Of a stretch of DNA of 64,000 nucleotides, positions 2,600 through 59,300 are shown in pieces; within the stretch, counting starts at the first letter, position 1; each line of letters opens with the position of its first letter. The position numbers and the translations under genes were made by a program. The stretch lies in contig NC_043010.1 of NCBI RefSeq assembly GCF_006345805.1, forward strand, positions 59,706,001 through 59,770,000, in the 5' to 3' direction. The DNA comes from Octopus sinensis. Taxonomy: Eukaryota. Under the pieces are notes generated by a model that saw nothing but the letters and a program-made list of their open reading frames with translations, made no database searches and was not told where the DNA came from.

Positions 2600-5500
2600 A
2601 TGCAGTTGTTTCTGTGTGTTTTACTGACTTTCTTCCACTGTTCTCTAAGTGAAGATATCACATATCATGTTAAAGAAGAGAATAGTCCCTATACCTATGT
2701 AGGGGACATTGCTACTGACTTACAGAAATCAGACAGCTCCTTCTTAAAGAATAAGGATTTAATTACATTTAGTCAACTACAGCAAAAGGGAGAACAGTTG
2801 TTCAATGTGACGAGAACAGGTAAACTGTACACTGTTGAGACATTGGATGCTGAGTCTGTGTGTAGTTATGAGAAAGAATGTTTTGAAATCGTTAAAGTTG
2901 CAGTTCACAAATCCAAGACATTTATGAAGATCTTAAAGATTAAAGTCATCATAGAAGACATCAATGACCACCAACCTGAGTTTCCTAATGAAGAAATCAA
3001 ACTGATCTTTGGAGAAGGAGACAGAGATGGTATGAAGAAACCCATACCTAATGCCATTGACAAGGATATGAGTCCAGAAAACAGCTTAATTACTTATGAA
3101 TTAGATGGTGGAGATAACTATTTTTCATTAAGTGTTTCCAAAGAAGATGATGGATTATCAACATTAGAAATTATATTAGAAGAGAAATTAGATAGAGAAA
3201 AGAAGGACGATTATGATATTGAAGTCATTGCTAAAGATGGAGGAACTCCACCAAAACAATCTGTTTTAAATGTGAAAATATCTGTGGAAGATCAAAATGA
3301 TAATAAACCACAATTTTCTCAACGTATCTACAATGTTTCTATAGAACATAAACATAAAAAGACTATTCCAGTAGTCACATTATCTGCCAGTGATTTAGAC
3401 ATTGGCAGGAATGGTAAAATATCTTTCTATTTCGGTCGAAAAACAGATGCTAAAATGAAAGAATACTTCCATCTAGATGAAAATTCTGGGAAATTATTCT
3501 TAGAAAAACCTTTAAATCTGGATATAAAAGAGTCATTTAAATTGTATGTAAAAGCTAAAGATAATGGTATGCCTCCTCTCAGTTCCATAGCAACGGTTAT
3601 GGTAAATGTTATCAACCAACACAACAATCCCCCAAATATTGATGTGAACTTTATTTCTACACAGAATCACAACACAGCTACCATTCTGGAAGACATCAAA
3701 GTTGGTAGTTTCATTGCTTATGTGATGGTCACTGACAACGATGTTGGACACAATGGACAGGTGAACTGTCATATCAAAGATGACACATTCAAACTACAGT
3801 CAATGGGATCGAAGGAATATAAAATAGTTCTAAAGAAAGCAGTAGACAGAGAGACACAGGAACATTATCACTTTACTGTGTCGTGTGAAGATAAAGGATT
3901 ACCTGCTCTGAAAACTGATAAAGATCTGTCAATCCAAGTGTTGGATGTGAATGATGTAGAACCACACTTTACGAAAGACACATTCAAGTTCCTTACCTAT
4001 GAGAATGACAAAGCTAATTTCCCTATTGGCTTTATCAATGCTACAGACCCAGATATTGGTAAGGGAGGTGAATTGTCTTATTCTCTGAGAAATAAACAGC
4101 AATATCGTCTGCCATTCCAGATTATCAACTCTGGCTTTATTTCAACAAACCAGTCTTTAGACAGAGAACACAGAGATTTCTATGAGTTTGAGGTTTTTGT
4201 GAAAGACAATGGAAGCCCATCTCTGAATAACACAGTGAATGTTGAAGTGGAAGTATTGGATAGAAATGATAATGCTCCATATTTTACATTTCCTAGTGTT
4301 GACCCTTTCACTCTTAATGTCCACTATCATCCGCAAAGTAAGAACGACATCACAGTTCTGAAAGCATCTGATATAGACAGTCACATGAATGCTTTTCTCA
4401 GGTACGAAATCGTTTCAGGTAACGAGAGACAGTTATTTAAACTAGACTCGTTCACTGGTGTGTTATCTTACTCTCGCACAGTTTACCAAAACGATGCCGG
4501 ATCATATGAGCTTGAGTTTGTTGTGAAAGACAGTGGTACTCCAGTTCTGTCAGCAACAACTAGTGTGTCTTTGACACTGACTGTTAGTAACAAGACGTCA
4601 CCAATGTTCACAGCTGTGCACCTACCAAGTGATAACACAATAGATGCGACATTGTTGATTATCATTGTAGTAGCAGCTGTGATAGTATCTATAGCTATTG
4701 TGGTTTCTATAACCCTGTGTATTGTGAGATGTAACAATGTGAGAAATAGCTCATCTGAAAGAACTGCAGAAGAGAAACAGGCATACCAATGTCGCAATGA
4801 GATGAGACAGTTGATCTATCAAGGTAACAACAGTGTACCTGTGATGTCAGGTAATCGAGGAGAGATGTCAGACAGATATGGTCATTCGAGGAGCCATTAC
4901 TATCCTGAAGACTGGAAGACATCGACAATGAGCAGAACTCTTCAAAAGTCTACAAAGGTAAGCTAATGTATAATTAAGAATGATTTTACTAAATGTTTTA
5001 TGTTTGACAATTATGGTTTTGTTGACCAATTTTATGGAATATTTTAGATTGTAAGTCTTCTAAAGATAGATTATTTCTCATTCAGAAAATACAATTCCTG
5101 GTATGGTGATGAATATTTTTTACTGTATTGATTTATTTATGATTATTTCTGTCTGTAACTTGTAAAATGATAGGATCCCAGACAACTTGGGGGGAAACCC
5201 CTCAGTAAAAACTATTGAGATAATTCTCTTGAGTCTGATGGTGAAGACAGCATGCCAAACTCTGCATCTCTTTTGAAACCAACATTGCATTGGAAAAACA
5301 GTCATGCATGCACCCATGCACACACATACACACACACACATATACGCATACACAGATTCCAAGCTTACATTATCCTTCCAGAAAGAAGTCCCTGAAAGGC
5401 CATAAATATTTTCCTTAATCTCCCATATCTCATATGAATCACTTGGTTTAATCCTTAATCCTCAAACTGTAACTCTCGGGAATCTCTGACTTCACACATT

Positions 5501-8500
5501 GACTTACATTTGCTTACATTTATTTTACAGCAGAAATACAGTCAACCGATTGAGGTGACATCTTATGGAGACAACAGACCATCTTCTCACTATCCCACTG
5601 ACACACTGGCCAGTCGTAAGAGCAGTGGACAGTGCTGGAGTGAGCGGTCAAGCAGACAGTATGAAGAAATACCAGCAATGTCAGGTAAAACAATCTCATT
5701 CATTTATTTTTTTATTATTACCAGTGGTACACAATGGAGTGAACCCTAAATAAAGCACAGGATTTTGATGACATCAATTTTTTTATATATTCAATCCAGA
5801 ACGCGGCTAACATTTACATGAATTAGTAAGGATTATCACTTTAAGATGACCTTCAATGTTTGTGGACAACACACAGTTGTCCATTTGTTTTGGGCTCAGT
5901 GTTTCATCGCGTGCTCAACTACATATATTCATATTGTTATAAACTTAGCTTTATTACAATTTGTAATAAAGAACATGGAATAATTACATGATGGTCCATT
6001 TCATCAGGTGATGATGGTGGCACAACGGCAGCAGTGGTCTCCATCCAACACGACCTCATCAAGTTGAAAGATTGTAGTAAAGAATCTGATCTTACATTTC
6101 CCCCCCAGCATAAGGTCCTTCTCATTTATGCATAAACCTGCATCTTTTTGCCAGTTTCTGTATGGCCTGCAACATTCAGATTTTTTCTTCTTGATATTGA
6201 AATAAGTTGCATGTTTTTTCACATTCCAGATGTGTTTGTATAATATTGTATTCTTCTCTTCTAAATGTCTGAAGAAAGACGTATAATTGAACTTTCTGTA
6301 GACTTTGTACATGGTATTAAGACTTAGTTTGATGGAAGTGACTTTTGCTTCATATTTGCTCATTGCAACTTTTGTCTTTCTCAATGTGCAATCAATTTAG
6401 ATTAATTTGCTTGATTTTCTATGTTATGAGATTTGTTTCGTTGTGATTACAGTTCAGCATCTTGCTAGCTTTTCTGTAGTTTCCACATCTATGTATTTCT
6501 TATAGCGCATCTGTGTGTGTGTTGCTGTGGGACATCTTTCCTTTGGTGCTCTTGTGTTGTTTCCCATAGCTGGTTGTCTGGGAGTTCCTGATCTCTCTGG
6601 CAGGGACTAGCCTGTCTCATTCTTCTCACTGCTATTTCCTCAGACAGCCCCGATGGCGCTCTACACCCACACTTGTTATAAACATGCCTATTCTCTTTGG
6701 TGTTAAGCAATGCCTGCAATATTATTATATTGTATCAACCAACCAGAGATTCCTGCTGGGAAGGCAGATTCTACCTTTGCATAGTAAGAAATTTATAAGG
6801 AAATATAGACCATTGTGTGGAGAGTGCAGTGAATTTAGGTAGGTTAATTAATGAGTAAAATAAATGGGATTTTGAGAGAATTAATTATTTGTGCTGTTAA
6901 GTAGAAAAATAACTTATTTTTATTTAGGAAGTTTTATAAAATGAAGATTGTGTGATAATTAAGTAGTGGACCTTTTAATTAGGTTGTGATGTGATTTTCT
7001 CCTTTCCTGTGTCTGAAAGATGTATGATTAAAATAAACTTTAAATTTATCTTCTACTATACATATATCCGCCATTCACATTTTCACCATCTTCTCTCTCT
7101 TCTCCCTTACTCCTCACTTCCTTCAACTGGGGTAACTATGTATTTCCTTTACCTCAAGACACCTCCCTCAGTACTATACCCCACCCCTGCTGAGTGGTCT
7201 TGTCTTGGTGACCTCATCAAGTACCCAGTTCGAAAAGTACTCACTTTGCTAAGTAACCAGTACACTTTGGAAAGTGGTTGGCATTAGGAAGGGCATCAAG
7301 CTATAGAAACCAAAGCAAGTGCAGTCTTCTGACTTGCCAGCTGTTGTCAAACTGTCCAACCCATGCCAGCATGGAAAACAGATGTTGCTTAATGATGATG
7401 ATTTAAGTTTGGTTCGGTAGAGGTGACATCTGTTCTGTATGTGCTCATTTCAGCATTACAGGATTGAGGAGGCATGGATTTGTTTCTGCATTTGGATTTA
7501 GCATTGGTAATTTCGTTGGTTTACATGCTATGAGATTCTCCACATCAGAAGTAATGGTTGATAAATGTAGAGCAATTAGGACTAGATTTTAGCCATATAT
7601 TAATTATGACATTTAATAAAAAGGAGTGTGTGGACCAGATGTTGTTCAGGTATCTTTTCTTAGTAATAGATGATGAAGTTTTCAGAATATATATAAGATC
7701 TATGTTTGATTCTACTAGCTTCTAATGCATTATGAGAGACCATTTGAAGATTACTTAGTTTTTGAATGACAAATGAAACTTGAAGTAACAATATATTATA
7801 ATATATTAAACATGCAATATGTTAGTTACCTGGCTGCACCCCCCCACACACACACACGCAAAGACCTATCAATAGATGCACAAATGTACATATCATTTCA
7901 TAAGGGTCTACATAAATATGTACACACCCTGAAGACATATTTATCTACTTTGTTTATCACACACACACATTTTTAGATTATAATTTTTTGTGTTCATAAT
8001 AGATTTGCTTTGCACTTGTCTTATCTGACTGTTCCATTTTAAACCCTTAGAAGATGTTATTTGTGGATGCTCTCCTCTTTTCAGTCTATATAGCATCTAT
8101 TATTAACATCAACACTTCTCTAAGTTGAAATGGGATTATTTTGCCTGTAACGACATTTGTGCCAATCAAATTGAATTCAGTCAATTATAATTATTATAGC
8201 GATAAGTTAAAAATATACCCACAAACCCTTTTCCCCACAAGTTAAAGCATAGCTTACATTGCTGACATCTCGTCAGTTGTTCATTGTAATGCTTGAGGGT
8301 CTAATTGTGTTGTCAGATATCATTCTTTTGTGGTTGTTATTTTTATAGATCACTGACTACACATAAAATGATTGATTTCTAATGTCAGTGAGTCAATACT
8401 TATTGTCTCCATGAACTATGTAGTAAGTTTATTTGATATATATATTTGTATATGTGTGTTTCAGGAATCTATGGTGGTGCCCCACCCGATGTATCAAGCA

Positions 8501-8586
8501 CCAGTGAGAGAGACCATTACCAAGACAGATATGTGAAACCTCCAGAGAGACAGTTACCTTCAACACCAGATGTTGTTGTCAGTTAA
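2600..8586 (+). CDS. PCDH: Protocadherin G1 (6 EC + TM + cytoplasmic tail), join(2600..4957,5531..5684,8465..8586), 877 aa; exon 1 lies upstream of the window
   Basis: Signal peptide MQLFLCVLLTFFHCSLS; cadherin motifs DINDHQPEF, LDRE, DQNDNKPQF, DVNDVEPHF, DRNDNAPYF; EC1 Cys-X5-Cys (CSYEKEC); TM LLIIIVVAAVIVSIAIVVSITLCIV. Acceptor tttcag|2544, donor AAG|gtaag after 4957, acceptor cag|cag at 5531, donor G|gtaaaa after 5684, acceptor tttcag|8465. Phases 0 and 1 join in frame to ...PDVVVS*. Symbol is family-level only. Confidence 0.93.
5990..6400 (+). mobile_element. Possible highly degenerate CR1/L2-type reverse transcriptase remnant
   Basis: Fragments translate as DD...IQHDLIKLKDC and TLYMVLRLSL, weakly like LQxDLxxLxxW and LYxxLVRPxLEY; many stops. 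Confidence 0.3.
6480..6720 (-). mobile_element. RTE-clade LINE C-terminal fragment (degenerate)
   Basis: ORF 6489..6719 reads ALLN..RHVYN..LSEEIAVRRMRQASPCQRDQELPDNQLWETTQEHQRKDVP, matching the RTE C-terminal pattern ALNISWxxHxTN..I..RRLRxAGHCxRxxE..LWxPxHGxRxRGRP. Confidence 0.65.
7255..7403 (+). mobile_element. Partial non-LTR 3' end / SINE with (GAT)n tail
   Basis: gtggttggcattaggaagggcatc...tccaacccatgccagcatggaaaac...gatgatgat, same family as 38775..39033. Confidence 0.55.
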
Positions 8587-12263: not shown

Positions 12264-15200
12264 ATGTTGTTGTATCTGTGCATTTTACTGACTTTCTTCC
12301 ACTGTTATCTAAGTGAAGATATCACATACCATGTTAAAGAAGAGAATATTCCTCATACCTATGTAGGGGACATTGCTACTGACTTACAGAAATCAGACAG
12401 CTCCTTCATAAAGAATAAGGATTTAATTACATTTAGTCAACTGCAACAAAAGGGAGAACAGTTGTTCAATGTGACGAGAACAGGTAAACTGTACACTGTT
12501 GAGACATTGGATGCTGAGTCTGTGTGTAGTTATGAGAAAGAATGTTTTGAAATCGTTAAAGTTGCAGTTCACAAATCCAAGACATTTATGAAGATCTTAA
12601 AGATTAAAGTCATAATAGAAGACATTAATGACCACCAACCTGAGTTTCCAAAGAAAGAAATTACTCTAAGTTTTAGGGAAGGAGACAGAGATGGTATGAA
12701 GAAACCCATACCTCATGCTATAGACAAGGATATGAGTCATGAAAACAGCTTAATTACTTATGAATTGATGAAAGATAATGGACATTTTTCATTAAGTGTT
12801 TCCAAAGAAGATGATGGATTATCAACACTAAGAATTATTTTGGAAGACAAATTAGACAGAGAAACGAAAGACAGTTACAATATTGAAGTCATTGCTAAAG
12901 ATGGAGGAACTCCACCAAAACAATCTGTTTTAAATGTTAAAATATCTGTGGAAGATGAAAATGATAATGCACCGCAATTTTCCCAACGTGTGTACAATGT
13001 TTCTATTGAACATAAACATAAAAAGAATATTCCAGTAGTCACATTATCTGCCAGTGATTTAGACATTGGCAGGAATGGTAAAATATCTTTCTATTTCAGT
13101 CAGAAAACAGATGCTAAACTGAAAGAATACTTCCATCTAGATGAAAATTCTGGAAAGCTATTCTTAGAAAAACCTTTAAATCTGGATATAAAAGAGTCAT
13201 TTAAATTGTATGTAAAAGCTAAAGATAAAGGTATGCCTCCTCTCAGTTCCATAGCAACGGTTATGGTAAATATCATCAACCAACAAAACAGTCCTCCAAA
13301 TATTGATGTGAACTTTATTTCTACACAGAATCACAACACAGCTACCATTCTGGAAGACATCAAAGTTGGTAGTTTCATTGCTTATGTGATGGTCACTGAC
13401 AACGATGTTGGACACAATGGACAGGTGAACTGTCATATCAAAGACGACACATTCAAACTACAGTCAATGGGATCAAAGGAATATAAAATAGTTCTAAAGA
13501 AAGCAGTAGACAGAGAGACACAGGAACATTATCACTTTACTGTGTCGTGTGAAGATAAAGGATTACCTGCTCTGAAAACTGATAAAGATCTGTCAATCCA
13601 AGTGCTAGATGTGAATGATGTTGAACCACACTTTACGAAAGACACATTCAAGTTCCTTACCTATGAGAATGACAAAGCTAATTTCCCTATTGGCTTTATC
13701 AATGCTACAGACCCAGATATTGGTAAGGGAGGTGAATTGTCTTATTCTCTGAGAAATAAACAGCAATATCGTCTGCCATTCCAGATTATCAACTCTGGCT
13801 TTATTTCAACAAACCAGTCTTTAGACAGAGAACACAGAGATTTCTATGAGTTTGAGGTTTTTGTGAAAGACAATGGAAGCCCATCTCTGAATAACACAGT
13901 GAATGTTGAAGTGGAAGTATTGGATAGAAATGATAATGCTCCATATTTTACATTTCCTAGTGTTGACCCTTTCACTCTTAATGTCCACTATCATCCGCAA
14001 AGTAAGAACGACATCACAGTTCTGAAAGCATCTGATATAGACAGTCACATGAATGCTTTTCTCAGGTACGAAATCGTTTCAGGTAACGAGAGACAGTTAT
14101 TTAAACTGGACTCGTTCACTGGTGTGTTATCTTACTCTCGCACAGTTTACCAAAATGATGCCGGATCATATGAGCTTGAGTTTGTTGTGAAAGACAGTGG
14201 TACTCCAGTTCTGTCAGCAACAACTAGTGTGTCTTTGACTCTGACTGTTAGTAACAAGACGTCACCAATGTTCACAACTGTGCACCTACCAAGTGATAAC
14301 ACAATAGATGCGACATTGTTGATTATCATTGTAGTAGCAGCTGTGATAGTATCTATAGCTATTGTGGTTTCTATAACCCTGTGTATTGTGAGATGTAACA
14401 ATGTGAGAAATAGCTCATCTGAAAGAACAGCAGAAGAGAAACAGGCATACCAATGTCGCAATGAGATGAGACAGTTGATCTATCAAGGTAACAACAGTGT
14501 ACCTGTGATGTCAGGTAATCGAGGAGAGATGTCAGACAGATATGGTCATTCGAGGAGTCATTACTATCCTGAAGACTGGAAGACATCAACAATGAACAGG
14601 ACACTTCAAAAGTCTACAAAGGTAAGATATATTCGTGTTTACTAAGAAATTCTCTTACTTTTCTATGTATATTTGAATAAACCTCCTTTTTCAAGAAATT
14701 TTATTCATTATGTGGAATTGTGTGAGTCATGTATATCTATTACTATATTCAACCATTGTTCAGTTGTATTTGTTAGATATCTTATTTAATGAATCCTTAC
14801 TGAAATATGTCTGGTTTTTCTAGAAAATAATCATTAGCGAAAATTTGATTATAGAAAGGAAGACAAAGCACCCTTCCAACACTTCCTCATTTCTGATCTT
14901 CACTGTTTTTCATGATAGTCAGAGTATAAACACATATATGCCATTCATTATTTCTTAGTAATGCCTAATATATCAATACTTTCATCATTGATGATAGTGT
15001 AATTATAGATATGAAGATATATTATGATGTGGTAGTAACTACCAATGTGTGATTGTTAATAGCATTCATTAAAATGAAAAGTGAAGCAGTTAATCCAAGA
15101 TGAAGCAAGGTTTCCATTTATGTAGATTGATTTGGCATTATGTGCACTGGTGATATGTATACCCAAACATAGAATGGTTAGGAATACAAGAAGTGCTCTT

Positions 15201-20394: not shown

Positions 20395-20550
20395 AGGCTG
20401 TGAGCTGGCAGAATTGTTATTGTGTTGGACAAGATGTTAAGTGGCATTTCTTCCGACTTTACGTTCTGATTTCAAATATTGCTGGGATCAACTTTGTCTT
20501 TTATCTTTTTGCGGTTGACAAAATAAGTACAAGTTGAGTGCTGTAATTGA
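20395..20550 (+). mobile_element. tRNA-derived SINE (cephalopod-type), degenerate
   Basis: gagctggcagaattgtta...tttacgttctgatttcaaat...gttgacaaaataagtac, homologous to 39283..39470. Confidence 0.55.
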
Positions 20551-21805: not shown

Positions 21806-24800
21806 ATGTTGTTACACCTGTGTGTTTTACTGACTTTCTTCCACTGTTCCCTAAGTGAAGATATCACATATCATGTTGAAGAAGAGAATAGTCCCTATAC
21901 CTATGTAGGGGACATTGCTACTGACCTACAGAAATCAGACAGCTCCTTCTTAAAGAATAAGGATTTAATTACATTTAGTCAACTGCAACAAAAGGGAGAA
22001 CAGTTGTTCAATGTGACGAGAACAGGTAAACTGTACACTGTTGAGACATTGGATGCTGAGTCTGTGTGTAGTTATGAGAAAGAATGTTTTGAAATCGTTA
22101 AAGTTGCTGTTCACAAATCCAAGACATTTATGAAGATCTTAAAGATTAAAGTCATAATAGAAGACATCAATGACCACCAACCTGAGTTTCCTCAGAAAGA
22201 AATTGATATACATTTCCGAGATGGAGATGGTAAAGGCATGAAAAGACCCATACCTCATGCTATTGACAAAGATATGAGTAATAAAAACAACTTAATTACT
22301 TATGAATTGAAAAATAACAATCAGTATTTCTCTTTATCAGTTTCTAAACAAACAGATGAGATATCAGCATTAGAAATTATTTTAGAAGATAAATTGGACA
22401 GAGAAAAGAAGGACAGCTACAATATTGAAGTCATTGCTAAAGATGGAGGAACTCCACCAAAACAATCTGTTTTAAATGTTAAAATATCTGTAGAAGATGA
22501 AAATGACAACAGACCACAATTTTCCCAAAGCATCTACAATGTCTCCATTGAACATAAACATAAAAAGAATATTCCAGTTGTCACATTATCTGCCAGTGAT
22601 TTAGATATTGGCAGGAATGGTAAAATATCTTTCTATTTTGCCAGAAAAACTAGTGAGAAAGTGAAGAGAAACTTTAATTTAGATGAAAGGACTGGAAAAT
22701 TATATTTAGCTACATCTTCAAAGATTGATACGGATGAATCTTTTAAAATATACATTGAAGCCAGGGATGATGGCACACCTCCTCTCAGTTCCATAGCCAC
22801 TGTTATGGTAAGTGTCATCAACCAACACAACAATCCTCCAAATATTGATGTGAACTTTATTTCTACACAGAATCATAACACAGCCACCATTCTGGAAGAC
22901 ATCAAAGTTGGTAGTTTCATTGCTTATGTGATGGTCACTGACAATGATGTTGGACACAATGGAGAGGTGAACTGTCATATCAAAGATGACACATTCAAAC
23001 TACAGTCAATGGGATCGAAGGAATATAAAATAGTTCTAAAGAAAGCAGTAGACAGAGAGACACAGGAACATTATCACTTTACTGTGTCGTGTGAAGATAA
23101 AGGATTACCTGCTCTGAAAACTGATAAAGATCTGTCAATCCAAGTGTTGGATGTGAATGATGTAGAACCACACTTTACGAAAGACACATTCAAGTTCCTT
23201 ACCTATGAGAATGACAAAGCTAATTTCCCTATTGGCTTTATCAATGCTACAGACCCAGATATTGGTAAGGGAGGTGAATTGTCTTATTCTCTGAGAAATA
23301 AACAGCAATATCGTCTGCCATTCCAGATTATCAACTCTGGCTTTATTTCAACAAACCAGTCTTTAGACAGAGAACACAGAGATTTCTATGAGTTTGAGGT
23401 TTTTGTGAAAGACAATGGAAGCCCATCTCTGAATAACACAGTGAATGTTGAAGTGGAAGTATTGGATAGAAATGATAATGCTCCATATTTTACATTTCCT
23501 GGTGTTGACCCTTTCACTCTTAATGTCCACTATCATCCACAAAGTAAGAACGACATCACAGTTCTGAAAGCATCTGATATAGACAGTCACATGAATGCTT
23601 TTCTCAGGTATGAAATCGTTTCAGGTAACGAGAGACAGTTATTCAAACTGGATTCGTTCACTGGTGTGTTATCTTACTCTCGCACAGTTTACCAAAATGA
23701 TGCCGGATCATATGAGCTTGAGTTTGTTGTGAAAGACAGTGGTACTCCAGTTCTGTCAGCAACAACTAGTGTGTCTTTGACACTGAGTGTTAGTAACAAG
23801 ACGTCACCAATGTTCACAGCTGTGCACCTACCAAGTGATAACACAATAGATGCGACATTGTTGATTATCATTGTAGTAGCAGCTGTGATAGTATCTATAG
23901 CTATTGTGGTTTCTATAACGCTGTGTATTGTGAGATGTAACAATGTGAGAAATAGCTCATCTGAAAGAACAGCAGAAGAGAAACAGGCATACCAATGTCG
24001 CAATGAGATGAGACAGTTGATCTATCAAGGTAACAACAGTGTACCTGTGATGTCGGGTAATCGAGGAGAGATGTCAGACAGATATGGTCATTCGAGGAGC
24101 CATTACTATCCTGAAGACTGGAAGACATCGACAATGAACCGGACACTGCAGAAGTCTACAAAGGTAAGCTTTCCTTTAATTAACGATCTGTTAGTAAATA
24201 ATGTGTAATTATTTATGATTTAGCTCAGTGTTTTATACTTGACAATAATTTTCCTGCCCAGTTTCGTAGAATTGTTTACACTCTAAATATTCTTAAGATA
24301 TAATATGTGTTTTAGGAAATGTCATTTCTGACATGGTGAGGAATTTTAAGTTTTTACTTCCATATTTATGCCATTATTTATATATTTTTTAGGTGTTGTC
24401 TGTAAATTGTAAGATATTTTATCTGAGAAGACATTTACCAGGAAATAAGACATCTTTTTATGCATTACAGTCTGGCATTTGATATTTGTCAATAGGATTG
24501 CATCTGATTTTGTAGAAACTTCTTACTTACAATAATTCAGATATCTTCATAGGCTTTGCTTCTGGAGATTAAAGCTGCCAAATCCAACATTACTCTACAC
24601 ACCCTGACAGTCTAAACTTGCATTATCCTTTCAGAAAAAAGGCTCTTAAAAATCCTGTAGAGTCACTTATAAAACCATTGTTAACAATTGTTTGTGACTT
24701 TAGCTAACTCATATTGTACATAATTCTTGTAGGAAATGAGGAAACATAAGGAGGTAAAAAGTGATGTTTTATTGTTTTGTCAGTGGAGGAATGGCAGTAC

Positions 24801-29507: not shown

Positions 29508-32500
29508 ATGCTGCTGTTTCTGTGTGTTATACTTACTTCCTTCCATTGTTATCTAAGTGAAGATATCACATACCACGTTGAAGAAGAGAATAGCCCCTAT
29601 ACCTATATAGGGGACATTGCTACCGACTTACAGAAATCGGACAGCTCCTTCTTAAAGAATAAGGATTTAATTACATTTAGTCAACTGCAACAAAAGGGAG
29701 AACAGTTGTTCAATGTGACGAGAACAGGTAAACTGTACACTGTTGAGACATTGGATGCTGAGTCTGTGTGTAGTTATGAGAAAGAATGTTTTGAAATCGT
29801 TAAAGTTGCTGTTCACAAATCCAAGACATTTATGAAGATCTTAAAGATTAAAGTCATAATAGAAGACATCAATGACCACCAACCTGAGTTTCCTGAGAAG
29901 GACATTACACTGATCTTTGGCGAAGGAGACAGAGATGGTATGAAGAAACCCATTCCTCATGCCATTGATAAAGATATGAGCCATGAAAACAACTTAATTA
30001 CTTATGAATTAAAAAAAGATAATGGACATTTTTCTTTATCAGTTTCAAAAGAAACAGATGAGATATCAGCATTAGGAATTATTTTAGAAGAGAAATTAGA
30101 CAGAGAAAAGAAGGACAGTTACAATATTGAAGTTATTGCTAAAGATGGGGGAACTCCACCAAAACAATCTGTTTTAGATGTTAAAATATCTGTGGAAGAT
30201 GAAAATGATAATAAACCACAATTTTCCCAACGAGTCTACAATATCTCTATAGAACATAAACATAAAAAGAATATTCCAGTAGTCACATTATCTGCCAGTG
30301 ATTTAGATATTGGCAGGAATGGTAAAATATCATATTATTTTGCAAGGAAAACTACTGAGAAAGTGAAGAGACATTTTAATTTAGATGAAAATACTGGGAA
30401 ATTATATTTAGCTACATCTTCAAATATTGATATGGACGAATCTTTTAAAATATACATTGAAGCCAGAGATGGGGGCAACCCTCCTCTCAGTTCCATAGCC
30501 ACTGTTATGGTAAATGTCATCAACCAACATAATAATCCCCCAAATATTGATGTGAACTTTATTTCTACACAAAATCACAACACAGCCACCATTCTGGAAG
30601 ACATCAAAGTTGGTAGTTTCATTGCTTATGTGATGGTCACTGACAACGATGTTGGACACAATGGACAGGTGAACTGTCATATCAAAGACGACACATTCAA
30701 ACTACAGTCAATGGGATCGAAGGAATATAAAATAGTTCTAAAGAAAGCAGTAGACAGAGAGACACAGGAACATTATCACTTTACTGTGTCGTGTGAAGAT
30801 AAAGGATTACCTGCTCTGAAAACTGATAAAGATCTGTCAATCCAAGTGATGGATGTGAATGATGTAGAACCACACTTTACGAAAGACACATTCAAGTTCC
30901 TTACCTATGAGAATGACAAAGCTAATTTCCCTATTGGCTTTATCAATGCTACAGACCCAGATATTGGTAAGGGAGGTGAATTGTCTTATTCTCTGAGAAA
31001 TAAACAGCAATATCGTCTGCCATTCCAGATTATCAACTCTGGCTTTATTTCAACAAACCAGTCTTTAGACAGAGAACACAGAGATTTCTATGAGTTTGAG
31101 GTTTTTGTGAAAGACAATGGAAGCCCATCTCTGAATAACACAGTGAATGTTGAAGTGGAAGTATTGGATAGAAATGATAATGCTCCATATTTTACATTTC
31201 CTGGTGTTGACCCTTTCACTCTTAATGTCCACTATCATCCGCAAAGTAAGAATGACATCACAGTTCTGAAAGCATCTGATATAGACAGTCACATGAATGC
31301 TTTTCTCAGGTATGAAATCGTTTCAGGTAACGAGAGACAGTTATTTAAACTGGATTCGTTCACTGGTGTGTTATCTTACTCTCGCACAGTTTACCAAAAT
31401 GATGCCGGATCATATGAGCTTGAGTTTGTTGTGAAAGACAGTGGTACTCCAGTTCTGTCAGCAACAACTAGTGTGTCTTTGACACTGACTGTTAGTAACA
31501 AGACGTCACCAATGTTCACAGCTGTGCACCTACCAAGTGATAACACAATAGATGCGACATTGTTGATTATCATTGTAGTAGCAGCTGTGATAGTATCTAT
31601 AGCTATTGTGGTTTCTATAACCCTGTGTATTGTGAGATGTAACAATGTGAGAAATAGCTCATCTGAAAGAACAGCAGAAGAGAAACAGGCATACCAATGT
31701 CGCAATGAGATGAGACAGTTGATCTATCAAGGTAACAACAGTGTACCTGTGATGTCAGGTAATCGAGGAGAGATGTCAGACAGATATGGTCATTCGAGGA
31801 GCCATTACTATCCTGAAGACTGGAAGACATCGACGATGAGCAGAAGTCTTCAAAAGTCTACAAAGGTAAGCTTTACTTCAGTTTAAAATCTCTTAGTAAA
31901 TAATGTGTAATTAAGAATTATTTAGCAAAATGTTTTATTTTTGACATTACATATCACTTGTCATATTTTAAAGTATTGTTTATCTTCAGAATGTTCAAAT
32001 TATATATTATATATTGTTCAGGGAATTCAATTCCTGATATGATTTTGAATATTTATTTATTCATTTGTTAGTTTTATGTCTTTATTACCTCTGCCAAGGA
32101 AGGAGGTTATGTTTTCATTGTCGCCGGTTTGTCCGTCTGTGTGCAAAATAACTCAAAAAGTTGTGAACTGAATTTGATGAAACTTGCAGGAAAAGTAGGT
32201 AATGACGCAAGGAACAGATGATTAAATTTTGGTAGTGATCCAGGAATTTTGTGGATTCTTGAAGGATTTTTCATTTGTTATATTTACTTTACATGAAGTA
32301 TTACAATGTTACGTTCCTTGCTTATCTCCCTTGAAAACACATCGTTTCCACGTAACCTGTGGTGGGCTTGCTGTTTAGAGACAGTGTTGATGATGACGAT
32401 GGTTGAGATAAGTATGGGGGGAGGATAAAATAGTATTGGTGGTTATAATGGCGACAAGAGCAGTGTGATGCTGAGGTGATGGTGGTAATAGTGGTGTTGA

Positions 32501-40217: not shown

Positions 40218-43200
40218 ATGTTGTTACACCTGTGTGTTTTACTGACTTTATTCCACTGTTATTCAAGTGAAGATATCACATACCATGTTAAAGAAGAGAA
40301 TATTCCTCATACCTATGTAGGGGACATTGCTACTGACTTACAGAAATCAGACAGCTCCTTCCTAAAGAATAAGGATTTGATTACATTTAGTCAACTGCAA
40401 CAAAAGGGAGAACAGTTGTTCAATGTGACGAGAACAGGTAAACTGTACACTGTTGAGACATTGGATGCTGAGTCTGTGTGTAGTTATGAGAAAGAATGTT
40501 TTGAAATCGTTAAAGTTGCTGTTCACAAATCCAAGACATTTATGAAGATCTTAAAGATTAAAGTCATAATAGAAGACATCAATGACCACCAGCCTGAGTT
40601 TCCTGAGAAAGAAATCACAGTAATCTTTGGTGAAGGTGATGGTAGAGGTATGAAGAAGGCTATACCTAATGCTATAGACAAAGATATGAACCATGAAAAC
40701 AGCTTAATTACTTATGAATTAAAAAAAGATAATGGACATTTTTCATTATCAGTTTCTAAACACACCGATGAATTTTCAGCATTAGAGATTATTTTAGAAG
40801 AGAAATTAGACAGAGAAAAGAAGGACAGCTACAATATTGAGGTCATTGCTAAAGATGGGGGAACTCCACCAAAACAATCTGTTTTGAATGTTAAAATATC
40901 TGTAAAAGATGAAAATGACAACAGACCACAATTTTCTCAGAGTATCTACAATGTCTCTATTGAACATAAACATAAAAAGAATATTCCAGTAGTCACATTA
41001 TCTGCCAGTGATTTAGATATTGGCAGGAATGGTAAAATATCATATTACTTTGCCAGGAAAACTGCTGAGAAAATGAAGAGACATTTTAATTTAGATGAAA
41101 ATACTGGGAAATTATATATAGCTACAACTTCAAAAATTGATAAGGATGGATCATTTAAATTATACATTGAAGCCAGAGATGATGGCACATCTCCTCTCAG
41201 CTCCATAGCCACTGTTATGGTAAATGTCATCAATGAACACAACAATCCCCCAAATATTGATGTGAACTTTATTTCTACACAGAATCACAACACAGCTACC
41301 ATTCTGGAAGACATCAAAGTTGGTAGTTTCATTGCTTATGTGATGGTCACTGACAATGATGTTGGACACAATGGACAGGTGAACTGTCATATCAAAGACG
41401 ACACATTCAAACTACAGTCAATGGGATCGAAGGAATATAAAATAGTTCTAAAGAAAGCAGTAGACAGAGAGACACAGGAACATTATCACTTTACTGTGTC
41501 GTGTGAAGATAAAGGATTACCTGCTCTGAAAACTGATAAAGATCTGTCAATCCAAGTGTTGGATGTGAATGATGTAGAACCACACTTTACGAAAGACACA
41601 TTCAAGTTCCTTACCTATGAGAATGACAAAGCTAATTTCCCTATTGGCTTTATCAATGCTACAGACCCAGATATTGGTAAGGGAGGTGAATTGTCTTATT
41701 CTCTGAGAAATAAACAGCAATATCGTCTGCCATTCCAGATTATCAACTCTGGCTTTATTTCAACAAACCAGTCTTTAGACAGAGAACACAGAGATTTCTA
41801 TGAGTTTGAGGTTTTTGTGAAAGACAATGGAAGCCCATCTCTGAATAACACAGTGAATGTTGAAGTGGAAGTATTGGATAGAAATGATAATGCTCCATAT
41901 TTTACATTTCCTAGTGTTGACCCTTTCACTCTTAATGTCCACTATCATCCGCAAAGTAAGAACGACATCACAGTTCTGAAAGCATCTGATATAGACAGTC
42001 ACATGAATGCTTTTCTCAGGTATGAAATTGTTTCAGGTAACGAGAGACAGTTATTTAAACTGGATTCGTTCACTGGTGTGTTATCTTACTCTCGCACAGT
42101 TTACCAAAATGATGCCGGCTCATATGAGCTTGAGTTTGTTGTGAAAGACAGTGGTACTCCAGTTCTGTCAGCAACAACTAGTGTGTCTTTGACTCTGACT
42201 GTTAGTAACAAGACGTCACCAATGTTCACAGCTGTGCACCTACCAAGTGATAACACAATAGATGCGACATTGTTGATTATCATTGTAGTAGCAGCTGTGA
42301 CAGTATCTATAGCTATTGTGGTTTCTATAACCCTGTGTATTGTGAGATGTAACAATGTGAGAAATAGCTCATCTGAAAGAACAGCAGAAGAGAAACAGGC
42401 ATACCAATGTCGCAATGAGATGAGACAGTTGATCTATCAAGGTAACAACAGTGTACCTGTGATGTCAGGTAATCGAGGAGAGATGTCAGACAGATATGGT
42501 CATTCGAGGAGCCATTACTATCCTGAAGACTGGAAGACATCGACAATGAGCAGAAGTCTTCAAAAGTCCACAAAGGTAAGTTTTATTTCAATTATCAGTC
42601 TTGTAGTAAATAGCATTTAATTAAAAATGATCGAGTTTATTACATTATATCAGAATCACTGTTCCTTGATGATTGGTAGTATTTAATTTCCAAATGTATT
42701 TGATATGAAATATTCCATGTTGAAAAATTACTTTCGTGATGTATTGATGAGAAATACATTTTGCCCTGCGCATGTTACAAGTTATTTGATGTTTAATGAA
42801 TCTCTAGCAATTCTACCACAACAAGAATCAAAGATGCTTTCATACGTTGTAGGTTATGAATCTCTTTAATCACAGTCAAAAATGAGTAGACTTAGTAACG
42901 AGTTGACATAGATATTGTTGAAATTGTCTACAGTTATGTGCACTGTCTGAATGAGAATTCAAGGTATATAGCATGTGTGCATGTGTAGGTTCAAATAGGC
43001 TAATAGGAAACAATTGACAGAGAATTGGAAGTTGTGTTGATATTTTTCAATTTTCTCACTTTTTATAAAGTTAAATTAATCCTTTAATGTCTCTGTTTCA
43101 ATCCATCTCATGATAAATGTATCTGGACGTTAATAGTAGACAATTACTGTTTTTATTCTTTATCGAATATGTACACTTCTTTTAATATGGAGTGATAACT

Positions 43201-47555: not shown

Positions 47556-50500
47556 ATGCTGCTGTTTCTATGGGTTTTACTCACTTCCTTCCATTGTTCC
47601 CTAAGTGAAGATATCACATACCATGTTAAAGAAGAGAATAGTCCCTATACCTATATAGGGGACATTGCTACCGACTTACAGAAATCAGACAGCTCCTTCT
47701 TAAAGAATAAGGATTTAATTACATTTAGTCAACTGCAACAAAAGGGAGAACAGTTGTTCAATGTGACGAGAACAGGTAAACTGTACACTGTTGAGACATT
47801 GGATGCTGAGTCTGTGTGTAGTTATGAGAAAGAATGTTTTGAAATCGTTAAAGTTGCTGTTCACAAATCCAAGACATTTATGAAGATCTTAAAGATTAAA
47901 GTCATAATAGAAGACATCAATGACCACCAACCTGAGTTTCCTCAGAAAGAAATCACACTTTACTTTGGGGAAGGAGACAGAGATGGAATGAAGAAACACA
48001 TACCTAATGCTATTGACAAAGATATGAGTCCAAAAAACAGCTTAATTACTTATGAACTGAAAAAGGATAATGGACATTTTTCCTTATCAGTTTCAAAAGA
48101 AACAGATGAGATATCAGCATTAGGAATTATTTTAGAAGAGAAATTAGACAGAGAAAAGAAGGACAGTTACAATATTGAAGTCATTGCTAAAGATGGGGGA
48201 ACTCCACCAAAACAATCTGTTTTAAATGTTAAAATATCTGTGGAAGATGAAAATGATAATAAACCACAATTTTCTGAACGTATCTACAATGTCTCTATTG
48301 AACATAAGCATAAAAAGAATATTCCTGTAGTCACATTATCTGCCAGTGATTTAGATATTGGCAGGAATGGTAAAATATCATATTATTTTGCAAGGAAAAC
48401 TGCTGAGAAAATGAAGAGACATTTTAATTTAGATGAAAATACTGGAAAATTACATTTAGCTACATCTTCAAAAATTGATAAGGATGAGTCTTTTAAATTA
48501 TACATTGAAGCCAGAGATGATGGCGCATCTCCTTTGAGTTCCATAGCCACTGTTTTGGTAAATGTTATCAATGAACACAACAATCCCCCAAATATTGATG
48601 TGAACTTTATTTCTACACAGAATCACAACACAGCTACCATTCTGGAAGACATCAAAGTTGGTAGTTTCATTGCTTATGTGATGGTCACTGACAATGATGT
48701 TGGACACAATGGAGAGGTGAACTGTCATATCAAAGATGACACATTCAAACTACAGTCAATGGGATCGAAGGAATATAAAATAGTTCTAAAGAAAGCAGTA
48801 GACAGAGAGACACAGGAACATTATCACTTTACTGTGTCGTGTGAAGATAAAGGATTACCTGCTCTGAAAACTGATAAAGATCTGTCAATCCAAGTGTTGG
48901 ATGTGAATGATGTAGAACCACACTTTACGAAAGACACATTCAAGTTCCTTACCTATGAGAATGACAAAGCTAATTTCCCTATTGGCTTTATCAATGCTAC
49001 AGACCCAGATATTGGTAAGGGAGGTGAATTGTCTTATTCTCTGAGAAATAAACAGCAATATCGTCTGCCATTCCAGATTATCAACTCTGGCTTTATTTCA
49101 ACAAACCAGTCTTTAGACAGAGAACATAGAGATTTCTATGAGTTTGAGGTTTTTGTGAAAGACAATGGAAGCCCATCTCTGAATAACACAGTGAATGTTG
49201 AAGTGGAAGTATTGGATAGAAATGATAATGCTCCATATTTTACATTTCCTAGTGTTGACCCTTTCACTCTTAATGTCCACTATCATCCACAAAGTAAGAA
49301 CGACATCACAGTTCTGAAAGCATCTGATATAGACAGTCACATGAATGCTTTTCTCAGGTACGAAATCGTTTCAGGTAACGAGAGACAGTTATTTAAACTG
49401 GATTCGTTCACTGGTGTGTTATCTTACTCTCGCACAGTTTACCAAAATGATGCCGGATCATATGAGCTTGAGTTTGTTGTGAAAGACAGTGGTACTCCAG
49501 TTCTGTCAGCAACAACTAGTGTGTCTTTGACACTGAGTGTTAGTAACAAGACGTCACCAATGTTCACAGCTGTGCACCTACCAAGTGATAACACAATAGA
49601 TGCGACATTGTTGATTATCATTGTAGTAGCAGCTGTGATAGTATCTATAGCTATTGTGGTTTCTATAACCCTGTGTATTGTGAGATGTAACAATGTGAGA
49701 AATAGCTCATCTGAAAGAACAGCAGAAGAGAAACAGGCATACCAATGTCGCAATGAGATGAGACAGTTGATCTATCAAGGTAACAACAGTGTACCTGTGA
49801 TGTCAGGTAATCGAGGAGAGATGTCAGACAGATATGGTCATACGAGGAGCCATTACTATCCTGAAGACTGGAAGACATCAACAATGAGCAGAACACTTCA
49901 GAAGTCTACAAAGGTAAGCCTTACTTCAATAAACAATCTGTTAGTAAATAATCTGCAATTAACTATGATTTAGCTTCAGTGTTTTATATTTGTGTTTTAT
50001 CCAGTGTTTTATAATTGACATTACGTTTCACTTGACCAATTTTACAGTATTGTTTTGCTTCATAATGTCCAAAATATATCTTATGTATGGTTAAGAAAAT
50101 ACCATTCCTGATATGGTGTTGAATACTTATTTAATTTTTTTTACTGTGATTACTGTTGTCCATTTTTTGTTAGATATTTCATGGCAAATGAAAATCTGAG
50201 AAGACATTTTCCAGGATAATTAGACATCTTTGTATACTTTACAGTCTGTCATTTTTAATATTTGTCAATAGGATTGCATCTGATTTTGTGGAAACTACCT
50301 AGTTAGAACAATTCAAATATCTTTGTAGTCTTTACTTCTGGTGATTAAAGCTCCCAAATCTAACATTACTGTACACACACTGACAGTCTAAACTTGCATT
50401 ATCCTTTCAGGAAGGAATCAATTATAAAAGTTTTGTTAATAATTGTGACTTCAGCTAACTTGTACTGTGTATAATTCTTGTGGGAAATGAAGAAACATAA

Positions 50501-54727: not shown

Positions 54728-55000
54728 GCCGCTGGACTGGCTCCTGTGCAGGTGGCACATAAAAAACACCATTTGAGTGTGGCTGTTGCCAGTACCGCTT
54801 GACTGGCCATCGTGCCGGTGGCACGTAAAAGCACACACTATACTCTCAGAGTGGTTGGCATTAGGAAGGACATCTAGTTGTAGAAGCTCTGTCAGATCAG
54901 ATTGGAGCCTGGTGCAGCCATCTGGCTCGCCAGTCCTCAGTCAACTGTTCAACCCATGCCAGCATGGAAAGCGGACATTAAACGATGATGATGATGATGA
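54728..55000 (+). mobile_element. Non-LTR 3' end / SINE with (GAT)n tail
   Basis: ggcacgtaaaagcacacactatactctcagagtggttggcattaggaagg...ggacattaaacgatgatgatg. Confidence 0.7.
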
Positions 55001-55714: not shown

Positions 55715-55716
<2 letters not shown>

Positions 55717-55750: not shown

Positions 55751-55753
<3 letters not shown>

Positions 55754-56306: not shown

Positions 56307-59300
56307 ATGTTGTTACACCTGTGTGTTTTACTGACTTTCTTCCACTGTTATTTAAGTGAAGACATCACATACCATGTTAAAGAAGAGAATAATCCCTACA
56401 CCTATGTAGGGGACATTGCTGCTGACTTACAGAAATCAGACAGCTCCTTCTTAAAGAACAAGGATTCGATTACATTTAGTCAACTGCAACAAAAGGGAGA
56501 ACAGTTGTTCAATGTGACGAGAACAGGTAAACTGTACACTGTTGAGACATTGGATGCTGAGTCTGTGTGTAGTTATGAGAAAGAATGTTTTGAAATCGTT
56601 AAAGTTGCTGTTCACAAATCGAAGACATTTATGAAGATCTTAAAGATTAAAGTCATAATAGAAGACATCAATGACCACCAACCTGAGTTTCCTCAGAAAG
56701 AAATTGATATACATTTCCGAGAAGGAGATGGTAAAGGTATGAAGAAACACATACCTAATGCTATAGACAAGGATATGAGTCCAGAAAACAGCTTAATTAC
56801 TTATGAATTGAAAAAGGATAATGGACATTTTTCTTTATCAGTTGCAAAACAGACTGATGAAATATCAACATTACGAATTATTTTAGAAGAGAAATTAGAC
56901 AGAGAAAAGAAGGACAGTTACAATATTGAAGTCATTGCAAAAGATGGGGGAACTCCTCCAAAACAATCTGTTTTAAACGTTAAAATATCTGTGGAAGATG
57001 AAAATGATAATACACCAGAATTTTCCCAAAGTATCTACAATGTTTCTATTGAACATAAACATAAAAAGAATATTCCAGTCGTCACATTATCTGCCAGTGA
57101 TTTAGATATTGGCAGGAATGGTAAAATATCATATTACTTTGCCAGGAAAACTAGTGAGAAAGTGAAGAGAAACTTCAATTTAGATGAAAATACTGGAAAA
57201 TTATATTTAGCTACATCTTCAAAAATTGATAAGGACGAATCTTTTAAAATATACATCGAAGCCAGAGATGATGGCACATCTCCTCTGAGTTCCATAGCCA
57301 CTGTTTTGGTAAATGTCATCAATGAACACAACAATCCTCCAAATATTGATGTGAACTTTATTTCTACACAGAATCACAACACAGCTACCATTCTGGAAGA
57401 CATCAAAGTTGGTAGTTTCATTGCTTATGTGATGGTCACTGACAATGATGTTGGACACAATGGAGAGGTGAACTGTCATATCAAAGACGACACATTCAAA
57501 CTACAGTCAATGGGATCGAAGGAATATAAAATAGTTCTAAAGAAAGCAGTAGACAGAGAGACTCAGGAACATTATCACTTTACTGTGTCGTGTGAAGATA
57601 AAGGATTACCTGCTCTGAAAACTGATAAAGATCTGTCAATCCAAGTGTTGGATGTGAATGATGTAGAACCACACTTTACGAAAGACACATTCAAGTTCCT
57701 TACCTATGAGAATGACAAAGCTAATTTCCCTATTGGCTTTATCAATGCTACAGACCCAGATATTGGTAAGGGAGGTGAATTGTCTTATTCTCTGAGAAAT
57801 AAACAGCAATATCGTCTGCCATTCCAGATTATCAACTCTGGCTTTATTTCAACAAACCAGTCTTTAGACAGAGAACACAGAGATTTCTATGAGTTTGAGG
57901 TTTTTGTGAAAGACAATGGAAGCCCATCTCTGAATAACACAGTGAATGTTGAAGTGGAAGTATTGGATAGAAATGATAATGCTCCATATTTTACATTTCC
58001 TAGTGTTGACCCTTTCACTCTTAATGTCCACTATCATCCGCAAAGTAAGAACGACATCACAGTTCTGAAAGCATCTGATATAGACAGTCACATGAATGCT
58101 TTTCTCAGGTATGAAATCGTTTCAGGTAACGAGAGACAGTTATTTAAACTGGACTCTTTCACTGGTGTGTTATCTTACTCTCGCACAGTTTACCAAAATG
58201 ATGCCGGATCATATGAGCTTGAGTTTGTTGTGAAAGACAGTGGTACTCCAGTTCTGTCAGCAACAACTAGTGTGTCTTTGACACTGACTGTTAGTAACAA
58301 GACGTCACCAATGTTCACAGCTGTGCACCTACCAAGTGATAACACCATAGATGCGACATTGTTGATTATCATTGTAGTAGCAGCTGTGATAGTATCTATA
58401 GCTATTGTGGTTTCTATAACCCTGTGTATTGTGAGATGTAACAATGTGAGAAATAGCTCATCTGAAAGAACAGCAGAAGAGAAACAGGCATACCAATGTC
58501 GCAATGAGATGAGACAGTTGATCTATCAAGGTAACAACAGTGTACCTGTGATGTCAGGTAATCGAGGAGAGATGACAGACAGATATGGTCATTCGAGGAG
58601 CCATTACTATCCTGAAGACTGGAAGACATCGACAATGAGTCGGACACTTCAAAAGTCTACAAAGGTAAGCCTTACTTTGATTGACTATTTGTTAACAGTG
58701 AATGTTTGTTCAATAATTACATGACTTAAAAGCATTGACAATGAGCAGAAGTTTACCAAAAAGTATGAATGTATGATTTTCTTGTATTTTGTATCAGTAT
58801 TCTCATTGTTATAGAATTTATTTTTAATTACTCGGACATTTTTTATGTGTTCTTTCAGATAACCCCATTTGAGATAATTGAAACAATAAACACCATGATG
58901 ATATTTATATATTTTAAAATTTCAAATTAGTCATCACAATTGTACTTTAGATAATTATATGCAAATGTACTGTTCCTTCTTTACAAGTTTTTAATATTTT
59001 AAATTTTATCAAGTAACATAAACTTTACATAGTATTTATAACCTTTATATAGCAGTTTGTGGATTTAACCATCAGATACATGTAGTTAAAACCCAATAAC
59101 CTCGTGCTGTTTAGATAAAAACCATGTGTTCATATTTTACTGCCATAATATGATGAATGTATATTGCTTACATACACCTGATTACATGGAGAGATAAACA
59201 ATATAGATTGTGAATCATGCTTGAATATTTAAGCATTTATTATCTCATCTTCCACATATTTCTATGCAAATGAATAGACTGCAAGCATTGTAAAACATCT

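Follow-up and report, generated by a model that had tools for sequence, protein, structure and literature searches.

The stretch of DNA described here is a 64-kb window on Octopus sinensis contig NC_043010.1 (positions 59,706,001 to 59,770,000), which is part of the protocadherin array of this species. Seven open reading frames of about 800 amino acids, all on the forward strand and spaced 7.3-10.7 kb apart, are tandem protocadherin genes, designated G1-G7. In all seven genes the large coding exon is exactly 2,359 nt long from the ATG to the splice donor, and the seven exons align without gaps or indels. A canonical donor (AAG/GTAAG) closes each of them directly after the residues QKSTK. The large exon encodes a signal peptide, six extracellular cadherin domains (EC1-EC6), a transmembrane segment and the proximal cytoplasmic tail. 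Pfam assigned Cadherin_2 (PF08266, E = 1.1e-11) and five stretches of Cadherin (PF00028, E = 5.8e-69) to paralogue G3, and inspection of all translations revealed a putative transmembrane segment, LLIIIVVAAVIVSIAIVVSITLCIV, followed by a basic and polar tail. The nearest solved structures, 6vg1 (E = 4.9e-90) and 5szn, 5dzv and 6e6b (E of about 1e-73), are ectodomains of delta-type or clustered protocadherins. The top protein matches are O. sinensis protocadherins, with G6, G5 and G7 corresponding to P0001, P0002 and P0121 and being identical over 786 amino acids to XP_036365177, XP_036365289 and XP_029645053, respectively.

The roughly 90 C-terminal residues of these proteins come from two small 3' exons, and tblastn with the C-terminus of P0001 located one copy of both behind each large exon, the copies differing slightly in sequence. 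Because every unit has a private exon 2 and exon 3, the units are complete tandem genes and not vertebrate-style variable exons feeding constant exons; a vertebrate-type set of shared constant exons was rejected on the same ground. We conclude that protocadherin diversity at this array stems from the duplication of whole genes and that splicing to constant exons plays no part in it. When the 220 nt preceding each of the seven ATGs were aligned, a polypyrimidine tract and CAG (TTTCTnTTTCAG) appeared about 55 nt 5' of the ATG in every case, and this conserved splice acceptor points to an upstream non-coding exon for each gene. The coding features are as follows, the first coordinate of each large exon being that of its ATG.

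2540..2546, + strand: 3' splice acceptor TTTCAG before G1, with equivalents before the other six genes
2600..4958, + strand: G1 large coding exon, delimited by its open reading frame, ATG and splice donor; EC2-EC3 island at 2960-3679
12264..14622, + strand: G2 large coding exon; EC2-EC3 island at 12624-13343
21806..24164, + strand: G3 large coding exon; EC2-EC3 island at 22166-22885
29508..31866, + strand: G4 large coding exon; EC2-EC3 island at 29868-30587
40218..42576, + strand: G5 large coding exon; EC2-EC3 island at 40578-41297; shares nt 612-707 with G3 and nt 973-1018 with G6 and G7
47556..49914, + strand: G6 large coding exon; EC2-EC3 island at 47916-48635; mosaic, with a G4-like EC2 and a G5-like EC3
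56307..58665, + strand: G7 large coding exon; EC2-EC3 island at 56667-57386
5531..5686, 15610-15765, 25023-25178, 33380-33535, 43443-43598, 50759-50914 and 60356-60511, + strand: exon 2 of G1 to G7 in order, from tblastn
8455..8583 (5' edge approximate), 17953-18081, 26419-26547 and 35494-35622, + strand: last coding exon of G1 to G4
about 43945-44073, 51851-51979 and 63593-63721, + strand: last coding exon of G5 to G7

Variation among the seven large exons is concentrated in one island. Of 300 variable nucleotide sites, 216 fall in nt 361-1080 (aa 121-360), which correspond to EC2-EC3, and 38 lie in the signal-peptide region. Mean pairwise synonymous divergence (dS) is 0.45 in EC2-EC3, 0.11 in EC1 and 0.047 in the remainder of the exon from EC4 onwards. 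Taken by block, the proportion of synonymous differences (pS) is 0.008-0.065 in the homogenised parts versus 0.15-0.68 in EC2-EC3, where it peaks at 0.59-0.68 in the patches with the most variable amino acids (aa 130-143 and 276-291) and falls to 0.15-0.24 in the conserved EC2/EC3 core. The peak at the variable patches supports a part for selection, in that only sites tightly linked to selected differences would resist homogenisation. Paralogues differ at about 12% of nucleotides in EC2-EC3, more than in some of the surrounding non-coding DNA. The GC content of third codon positions (GC3) is 0.365-0.407 in the homogenised parts versus 0.247 in EC2-EC3, a contrast that is consistent with GC-biased conversion, other causes being possible.

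The same division appears in comparison with Argonauta. Protein identity from EC4 to the cytoplasmic part is at least 0.953 in all comparisons within Octopus and at most 0.948 in all comparisons between Octopus and Argonauta. In EC2-EC3, every Octopus gene has an Argonauta gene nearer to it than 7-31 of the 31 other Octopus genes, the Argonauta partner of G1 and G2 being P0018. More than 20 paralogues of Argonauta hians carry one Argonauta-specific EC4-to-cytoplasm sequence, indel included, and the Octopus paralogues carry the Octopus version, so that homogenisation is lineage-specific; in EC1-EC3 the Argonauta paralogues (P0007-P0035) are down to about 60% identity among themselves. The pattern in these sequence comparisons is classic concerted evolution across genera, with the homogenised part grouping by lineage and EC2-EC3 by gene type. 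A constant region maintained by concerted evolution thus extends to far more genes than those of the window.

A reading made from the sequence of the window alone (hereafter, the sequence-only reading) had proposed that EC2-EC3 is a patchwork of short segments shuffled between different pairs of paralogues, and had listed nine shared motifs as pairings that no single tree could accommodate. All nine were recovered exactly in the named sets of paralogues, at aa 130-341 of the aligned exon (2986-57330, which begins at aa 130 of G1 and ends at aa 341 of G7). The conflict among them is real and goes beyond chance, with the exception of two pairings that are not conflicts at all: G1+G2 "SKEDDGLSTL" merely tracks the main G1/G2 clade, and G1+G4 "LIFGEGDRDGMKKPIP" is the consensus (ancestral) state, without a single residue exclusive to these two genes. 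Several other pairings hang on one or two exclusive residues, such as H148 for G6+G7 and T188 and R190 for G2+G7.

Across all informative sites, 44% of site pairs are incompatible, and both the pairwise homoplasy index (PHI) and the neighbour similarity score (NSS) reject a single tree at p < 0.0005, whether all seven genes or only G3-G7 are taken; on this point the sequence-only reading was borne out. Among G3-G7, nine of the ten possible two-versus-three splits are backed by 5-18 sites each, of which a tree can hold only two. Sites supporting the same split adjoin one another 16 times versus 7.4 expected (p = 0.002). Incompatibility also depends on distance: between sites that do not share a codon, the proportion of incompatible pairs is 0.17 at up to 15 bp, then 0.29, 0.32 and 0.35, and reaches 0.44-0.49 beyond 120 bp. 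The Hudson-Kaplan minimum number of recombination events is 33 versus 48 under permuted site order, a value usable solely relative to the permuted one because the infinite-sites assumption fails at a dS of 0.45.

Individual tracts and mosaics are recognisable. Identical tracts measure 13-93 bp, and six pairs of genes reach p <= 0.002 in a GENECONV-type test. Triplet tests of the 3SEQ type on G3-G7 yielded two Bonferroni-significant mosaics: G6, with G4-like EC2 followed by G5-like EC3 (p = 1.5e-4), and G3, with G7-like ends and a G6-like middle (p = 1.4e-4). G2 is of the G1/G2 type, yet at nt ~500-530 it holds the "KDNGH" block of the G4-G7 type. In a sliding map, the nearest paralogue of G7 switches among G3, G6, G4/G6, G5 and G5/G6 over 700 nt. 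The patches that recur in the argument are these.

22204-22219, + strand: "DIHFR" patch of G3
22417-22512, + strand: tract of G3 in common with G5 (nt 612-707)
30039-30131, + strand: 93-bp run of G4 identical to G6 (nt 532-624; p = 0.0008 in the GENECONV-like test)
56705-56720, + strand: G3-like "DIHFR" patch of G7 (nt 399-414), not in the O. vulgaris orthologue

Synonymous sites, at which the sequence-only reading had placed the decisive test between exchange of DNA and recurrent mutation, carry a recombination signal at short range. Between synonymous and nonsynonymous sites no more than 15 bp apart, the incompatibility score is 0.23 versus 0.43 (p = 0.0002); the effect persists at up to 30 bp (p = 0.0005) and weakens by 60-100 bp (p = 0.02-0.03). 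G3-G7 alone gave p = 0.017 at up to 15 bp and p = 0.006 at up to 30 bp. Pairs of synonymous sites no more than 30 bp apart are incompatible in 25% of cases versus 43.5% overall in the window genes (p = 0.0036), and the addition of the Octopus vulgaris genes (13 sequences) gave p = 0.0002. Three purely synonymous sites, located in codons with an invariant amino acid, are shared within the G3+G5 tract at nt 612-707 (687, 702 and 705). Synonymous site 423 belongs to a G3/G5/G7 block at nt 423-429, and synonymous site 1017 to the G5/G6/G7 patch. Such co-segregation of synonymous sites, and these examples of it, are not predicted by convergent selection on residues.

The syntenic array of O. vulgaris served as a control for the age of the patches. 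This locus (L002) spans 73 kb, contains seven coding exons, V1-V7, and is syntenic with the window through its flanks. Positional orthologues were set by flanking non-coding DNA and pair V2 with G2, V3 with G3, V5 with G4 (12.8 kb at 97.0% identity) and V7 with G7 (8 kb plus 3.9 kb). The two species differ by 0.022 in non-coding DNA (8,555 aligned sites), and their split is thought to date to about 2.5 Mya (PMC10700109). Public gene models are unreliable in the array: the O. vulgaris model P0137 spans 53 kb (L002 10001-63207) and omits five unannotated coding exons, and several of the O. sinensis models P0130, P0135, P0146 and P0148 are fusions of 2-5 adjacent genes (1,786-4,439 aa). V2 (L002 ~19621-21980) is shifted out of frame by one nucleotide inserted behind nt 181 of its coding exon; either V2 is a pseudogene in O. 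vulgaris or this is a homopolymer error of Oxford Nanopore (ONT) sequencing.

Positional orthologues differ in EC2-EC3 by 1.3% (G4/V5), 3.7% (G3/V3), 5.0% (G2/V2) and 6.1% (G7/V7) of nucleotides. For G7/V7, dS is 0.25 in EC2-EC3, 0.10 in the signal peptide plus EC1, and 0.041 from EC4 onwards. Ten of the differences between G7 and V7 lie within the 16 nt of nt 399-414, including synonymous sites 399 and 411. Here G7 holds the exact G3 state, "DIHFR", and V7 reads "TLQFE"; V3 ("DIHFG") matches the states exclusive to G3+G7 at nt 400 and 411 and differs at nt 405 and 412. The patch is embedded in 8 kb of collinear orthologous sequence at about 2% divergence. Since G7 matches G3 and V3 and V7 does not, the G3+G7 pairing was made in G7, or lost in V7, by a transfer of about 16-30 bp after the species split; at least one transfer is therefore younger than the split. 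G7 is also G3/V3-like, and V7 is not, at nt 848 (57154; S283, a residue of the second G3+G7 motif) and again at nt 2335-2340 (58641-58646). The three G3-like places in G7 could be the product of one long heteroduplex with patchy repair or of three independent events.

Other motifs are older. Six of the nine recur in a positional orthologue (V7, V5, V2 or V3) and hence are of greater age; "ARKTSEKVKRNF" is present in V3 and not in V7, and the EC2-EC3 region of V5, 98.8% identical to that of G4, retains all mosaic features of this gene. Orthologue differences for which both states occur in other paralogues make up 75 of 116 (65%) in EC2-EC3 and 57 of 94 elsewhere in the exon, the four orthologue pairs being pooled. 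Simulated point mutation, matched for codon-position counts and transition bias, gave 26% and 4%, respectively, and none of 2,000 simulations reached the observed values. It follows that most post-split change in the exon is re-use of paralogue variants. In EC4-cytoplasm, this excess could be partly inflated by polishing: the O. vulgaris assembly was built from noisy ONT R9.4.1 reads polished with 10x Illumina reads, and that of O. sinensis from PacBio and Hi-C data.

Exchange is also visible on the level of entire repeat units. In their 5' flanks, G4 and G6 share 98% identity over about 800 bp (28698-29507 and 46742-47555); in their 3' flanks, G3, G4 and G5 share 97-98% identity for 2.1 kb from the last exon (26419-28520, 35494-37595 and 43945-46046), with G3 and G5 at 98.4%. 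EC2-EC3 of gene pairs with near-identical flanks differ by 8-12%. The remaining flanks and most of intron 1 are diverged, and this unequal similarity makes the array a mosaic at the scale of the unit too. The notion that only the exons are conserved was dropped: it derived from MAFFT alignment of whole 10-kb units, which is an alignment artefact, and pairwise BLAST gave flanks that are 91-98% identical. The O. vulgaris array has an extra gene, V4, and V6 is a hybrid, G5-like in its exon and 5' flank and carrying the 3' flank of G6. V1 and G1 are 97.4% identical in the 3' flank, but their EC2-EC3 regions belong to different ancient types (81% identity), and the 5' flank of G1 is missing upstream of V1. 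We conclude that these differences in array structure between O. vulgaris and O. sinensis are due to unequal crossing-over; the unequal exchange invoked by the sequence-only reading is thus seen at the level of whole units, in V4, V6, V1/G1 and the blocks of flank. A dispersed repeat of about 160-250 bp (79-86% identity) occurs in intergenic or intronic positions of several units (38781-39023, 54752-55000 and, as a minus-strand copy, 62220-62376) and is probably a fragment of a transposable element.

The patchwork is best explained by short-tract interlocus gene conversion within the coding exon combined with unequal crossing-over of whole units, a reading to which we assign a probability of roughly 0.8. 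Conversion between paralogues, which the sequence-only reading had named, is favoured by the decay of incompatibility with distance, by the signal at synonymous sites and by the G3/G7 patch that arose after the species split. The molecular route, in which tracts would be short or patchy, and the part played by selection would be as follows. Paralogues would pair ectopically in the germline; crossovers would add, delete and hybridise units and their flanks, and non-crossover repair would copy sequence between coding exons. In EC1 and EC4-cytoplasm, where copies are about 99% identical, long and frequent tracts may hold the sequence uniform, so that these parts would act as a constant region upheld by recombination, not by splicing. 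In EC2-EC3, which are 10-20% diverged and would by homology contain the specificity contacts, only patches of about 16 to about 100 bp would become fixed, either because mismatches abort or patch-repair the heteroduplex or because selection, either purifying or preserving diversity, removes tracts that overwrite specificity patches. Independent transfer of each patch would leave neighbouring patches common to different pairs of paralogues.

Several observations weigh against this reading or narrow it. With a 100-bp window, PHI on purely synonymous sites is not significant (p = 0.13; p = 0.70 for G3-G7), and the signal at synonymous sites emerges only at distances of up to 60 bp; exchange tracts are shorter than the PHI window. 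The test on pairs of synonymous sites is likewise not significant in O. vulgaris alone (p = 0.09-0.27). Part of the incompatibility is recurrent mutation, caused by the multiply-hit codons 190, 238 and 283. Variant residues reappear across genera at the same hypervariable positions, and part of the residue sharing may be convergent or ancestral. Exchange is sporadic, since several EC2-EC3 types have been stable since the split of Octopus and Argonauta and the G4/V5 pair is essentially unchanged. The transfer at nt 399-414 may have been either a gain in G7 or an overwrite in V7. Polishing can swap variants between paralogues, above all in the near-identical EC4-cytoplasm.

A further layer may lie on top of conversion and crossing-over. 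The sequence-only reading held that a limited set of motifs is recombined into new combinations, with selection favouring the exchange as a generator of homophilic specificities. This adaptive role is possible but in our judgement doubtful. In its favour, the variable positions of G1-G7 are the hypervariable positions of the Argonauta paralogues (rho = 0.52, p = 1e-17), new combinations have appeared within about 2.5 My, and one N-terminal patch type of EC2 is joined to at least three types of EC3 across the family. In vertebrate protocadherins, specificity resides in loops of EC2/EC3, and EC1/EC4 supply non-selective affinity (PMC5001838); by analogy, the variable and homogenised domains of the octopus proteins would match this division. 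However, pN/pS, the nonsynonymous counterpart of pS divided by pS, is below 1 in every block (maximum 0.49), giving no sign of positive selection in the block-wise analysis, and many types are long-lived, G4/V5 being unchanged. Vertebrate structures suggest that the octopus proteins, too, form homophilic trans dimers, antiparallel over EC1-EC4, in which EC2/EC3 would set specificity. Such an EC2:EC3 contact demands self-complementary changes, and a single transferred patch therefore has an equal chance of abolishing binding and of creating a new specificity. Nor does the supposed limited set of motifs find support: the variants per patch are not few, and the seven genes show five of them at aa 134-138 alone. 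It is more economical to see conversion as the homogenising force, with selection resisting it at specificity patches, and the patchwork as leakage. We offer only as a speculation, itself rather unlikely, that octopods convergently rebuilt the "variable plus constant" logic of vertebrates without alternative splicing, EC1 and EC4-cytoplasm serving dozens of complete genes as a de facto constant region through concerted evolution, and ancient EC2-EC3 variants shared across genera being re-assorted by micro-conversion into a germline combinatorial library from which selection would take new self-recognition specificities within a few My or less.

That a single tree with recurrent or convergent substitution underlies the array, the motifs being ancestral or parallel at hypervariable codons and no DNA being transferred, is improbable. 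The multiply-hit codons named above, conflicting patterns interleaved 1 bp apart (nt 847/848), the consensus state of the G1+G4 motif and the recurrence of the same residues in Argonauta are what such a history would leave. It does not account for synonymous sites that co-segregate with adjacent motif variants and lose this association with distance, for runs of sites with the same split that include the three purely synonymous G3+G5 sites at nt 687-705, for the G7 patch that matches G3 across 10 differences in 16 nt, or for the 2.5-fold to 15-fold excess of orthologue differences that match a paralogue.

An artefact of assembly or polishing across near-identical tandem paralogues is very improbable, even though O. 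vulgaris was sequenced with ONT and polished with short reads, V2 carries its 1-nt frameshift, gene models are fused or skip exons in both species, and EC4-cytoplasm is about 99% identical among copies. Positional orthologues in a second species, assembled independently, contain six of the nine motifs, V5 keeps all mosaic features of G4 in EC2-EC3, and EC2-EC3 is the most divergent part of the gene, so reads map uniquely there. Unequal crossing-over alone, producing hybrid genes with a single junction and without gene conversion, would explain why segments of a unit give differing relationships, and also the extra V4, the hybrid V6 and the sharing of only a 3' part by V1 and G1. Patches of 16-100 bp that are flanked on both sides by sequence of another affinity, and the G7 patch inside 8 kb of collinear orthologous sequence at about 2% divergence, make it highly improbable as the whole explanation. 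Somatic or programmed rearrangement of EC2-EC3 in neurons, a possibility brought up by the sequence-only reading, can be set aside, as nothing in the data speaks for it, the mosaics sit in reference assemblies of germline origin and are for the most part conserved in both species, and no recombination signal sequences or donor cassettes turned up, though no search was aimed at them.

Conversion and crossing-over as proposed here bear on how cephalopod protocadherins are dated and classified. Concerted evolution confounds distances and trees based on whole genes, so that datings of a recent burst, and assignments of orthology, need to be redone on EC2-EC3 and flanks. Jiang et al. (2022; PMC9795677), in the parts of the text available to us, base a "recent 8-14 Ma burst" on distances between whole genes, with no mention of conversion; a concerted region spanning Argonauta and Octopus would bias such distance-based dating of the octopus protocadherin burst. 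As a pair, O. sinensis and O. vulgaris also provide natural chimeras, G7 and V7 differing mainly at aa 134-138 and at a few other positions.

The genes of the window belong to the same family, and to the same kind of chromosome-scale tandem array, as the cephalopod expansions described previously (Albertin et al., 2015; Albertin et al., 2022, PMC9068888; Styfhals et al., 2019, PMC6339937; Jiang et al., 2022, PMC9795677). The portions of the cephalopod protocadherin papers that we consulted treat gene conversion only in general terms, and in the cephalopod literature text searched, itself partial, no prior description was found of domain-resolved conversion, trans-specific EC2-EC3 types or EC2-EC3 mosaicism. 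The pattern described here is a cephalopod variant of the regional conversion known from vertebrate protocadherin clusters, with exchange inside EC2-EC3.

Regional conversion is well documented for vertebrate clustered protocadherins: the C-terminal ectodomains become uniform, and EC2-EC3 is left out (Noonan et al., 2004, Genome Res 14:354, as cited by PMC4978886 and PMC1852091). The vertebrate EC2-3 region "does not undergo gene conversion" or "appear not to be subject of gene conversion" (fugu, Yu et al., 2007, PMC1852091; Xenopus, Etlioglu et al., 2016, PMC4978886). The octopus array resembles these clusters in its tandem, same-strand large exons encoding the whole ectodomain and transmembrane segment, in EC4-6 and cytoplasmic parts that are near-identical at synonymous sites, in the highest dS at EC2-EC3 and in a homogenised block that is lineage-specific; the authors of the vertebrate studies likewise took GC3 as a marker of converted regions. 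Unlike vertebrate clusters, each octopus unit is a complete gene that has 3' exons of its own, EC1 is homogenised too, and EC2-3 shows short-tract exchange, with one event after the 2.5-My split. The locus therefore lacks the shared constant exons that define the vertebrate clusters, yet behaves like them in sequence evolution. The octopus expansion is evolutionarily independent of (convergent with) the vertebrate clusters, and cephalopod arrays reach a vertebrate-like arrangement of domains by another route, in which the parts for affinity and signalling are constant and the presumed specificity domains diverse. EC2-EC3 is not simply barred from conversion, and exchange over tens of base pairs is a concrete source of new combinations in isoforms.

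A second parallel lies in immune recognition. At MHC class I and II and KIR loci, interlocus conversion moves short, pre-existing motifs non-reciprocally between paralogues, giving patchwork recognition domains and trans-specific motifs in genes whose remainder is conserved. The octopus genes differ from these in three respects: recognition is presumed to be homophilic, so that a patch must stay self-complementary, dedicated donor pseudogenes were not seen, though no search was aimed at donor cassettes, and with pN/pS below 1 they bear no sign of balancing or positive selection.

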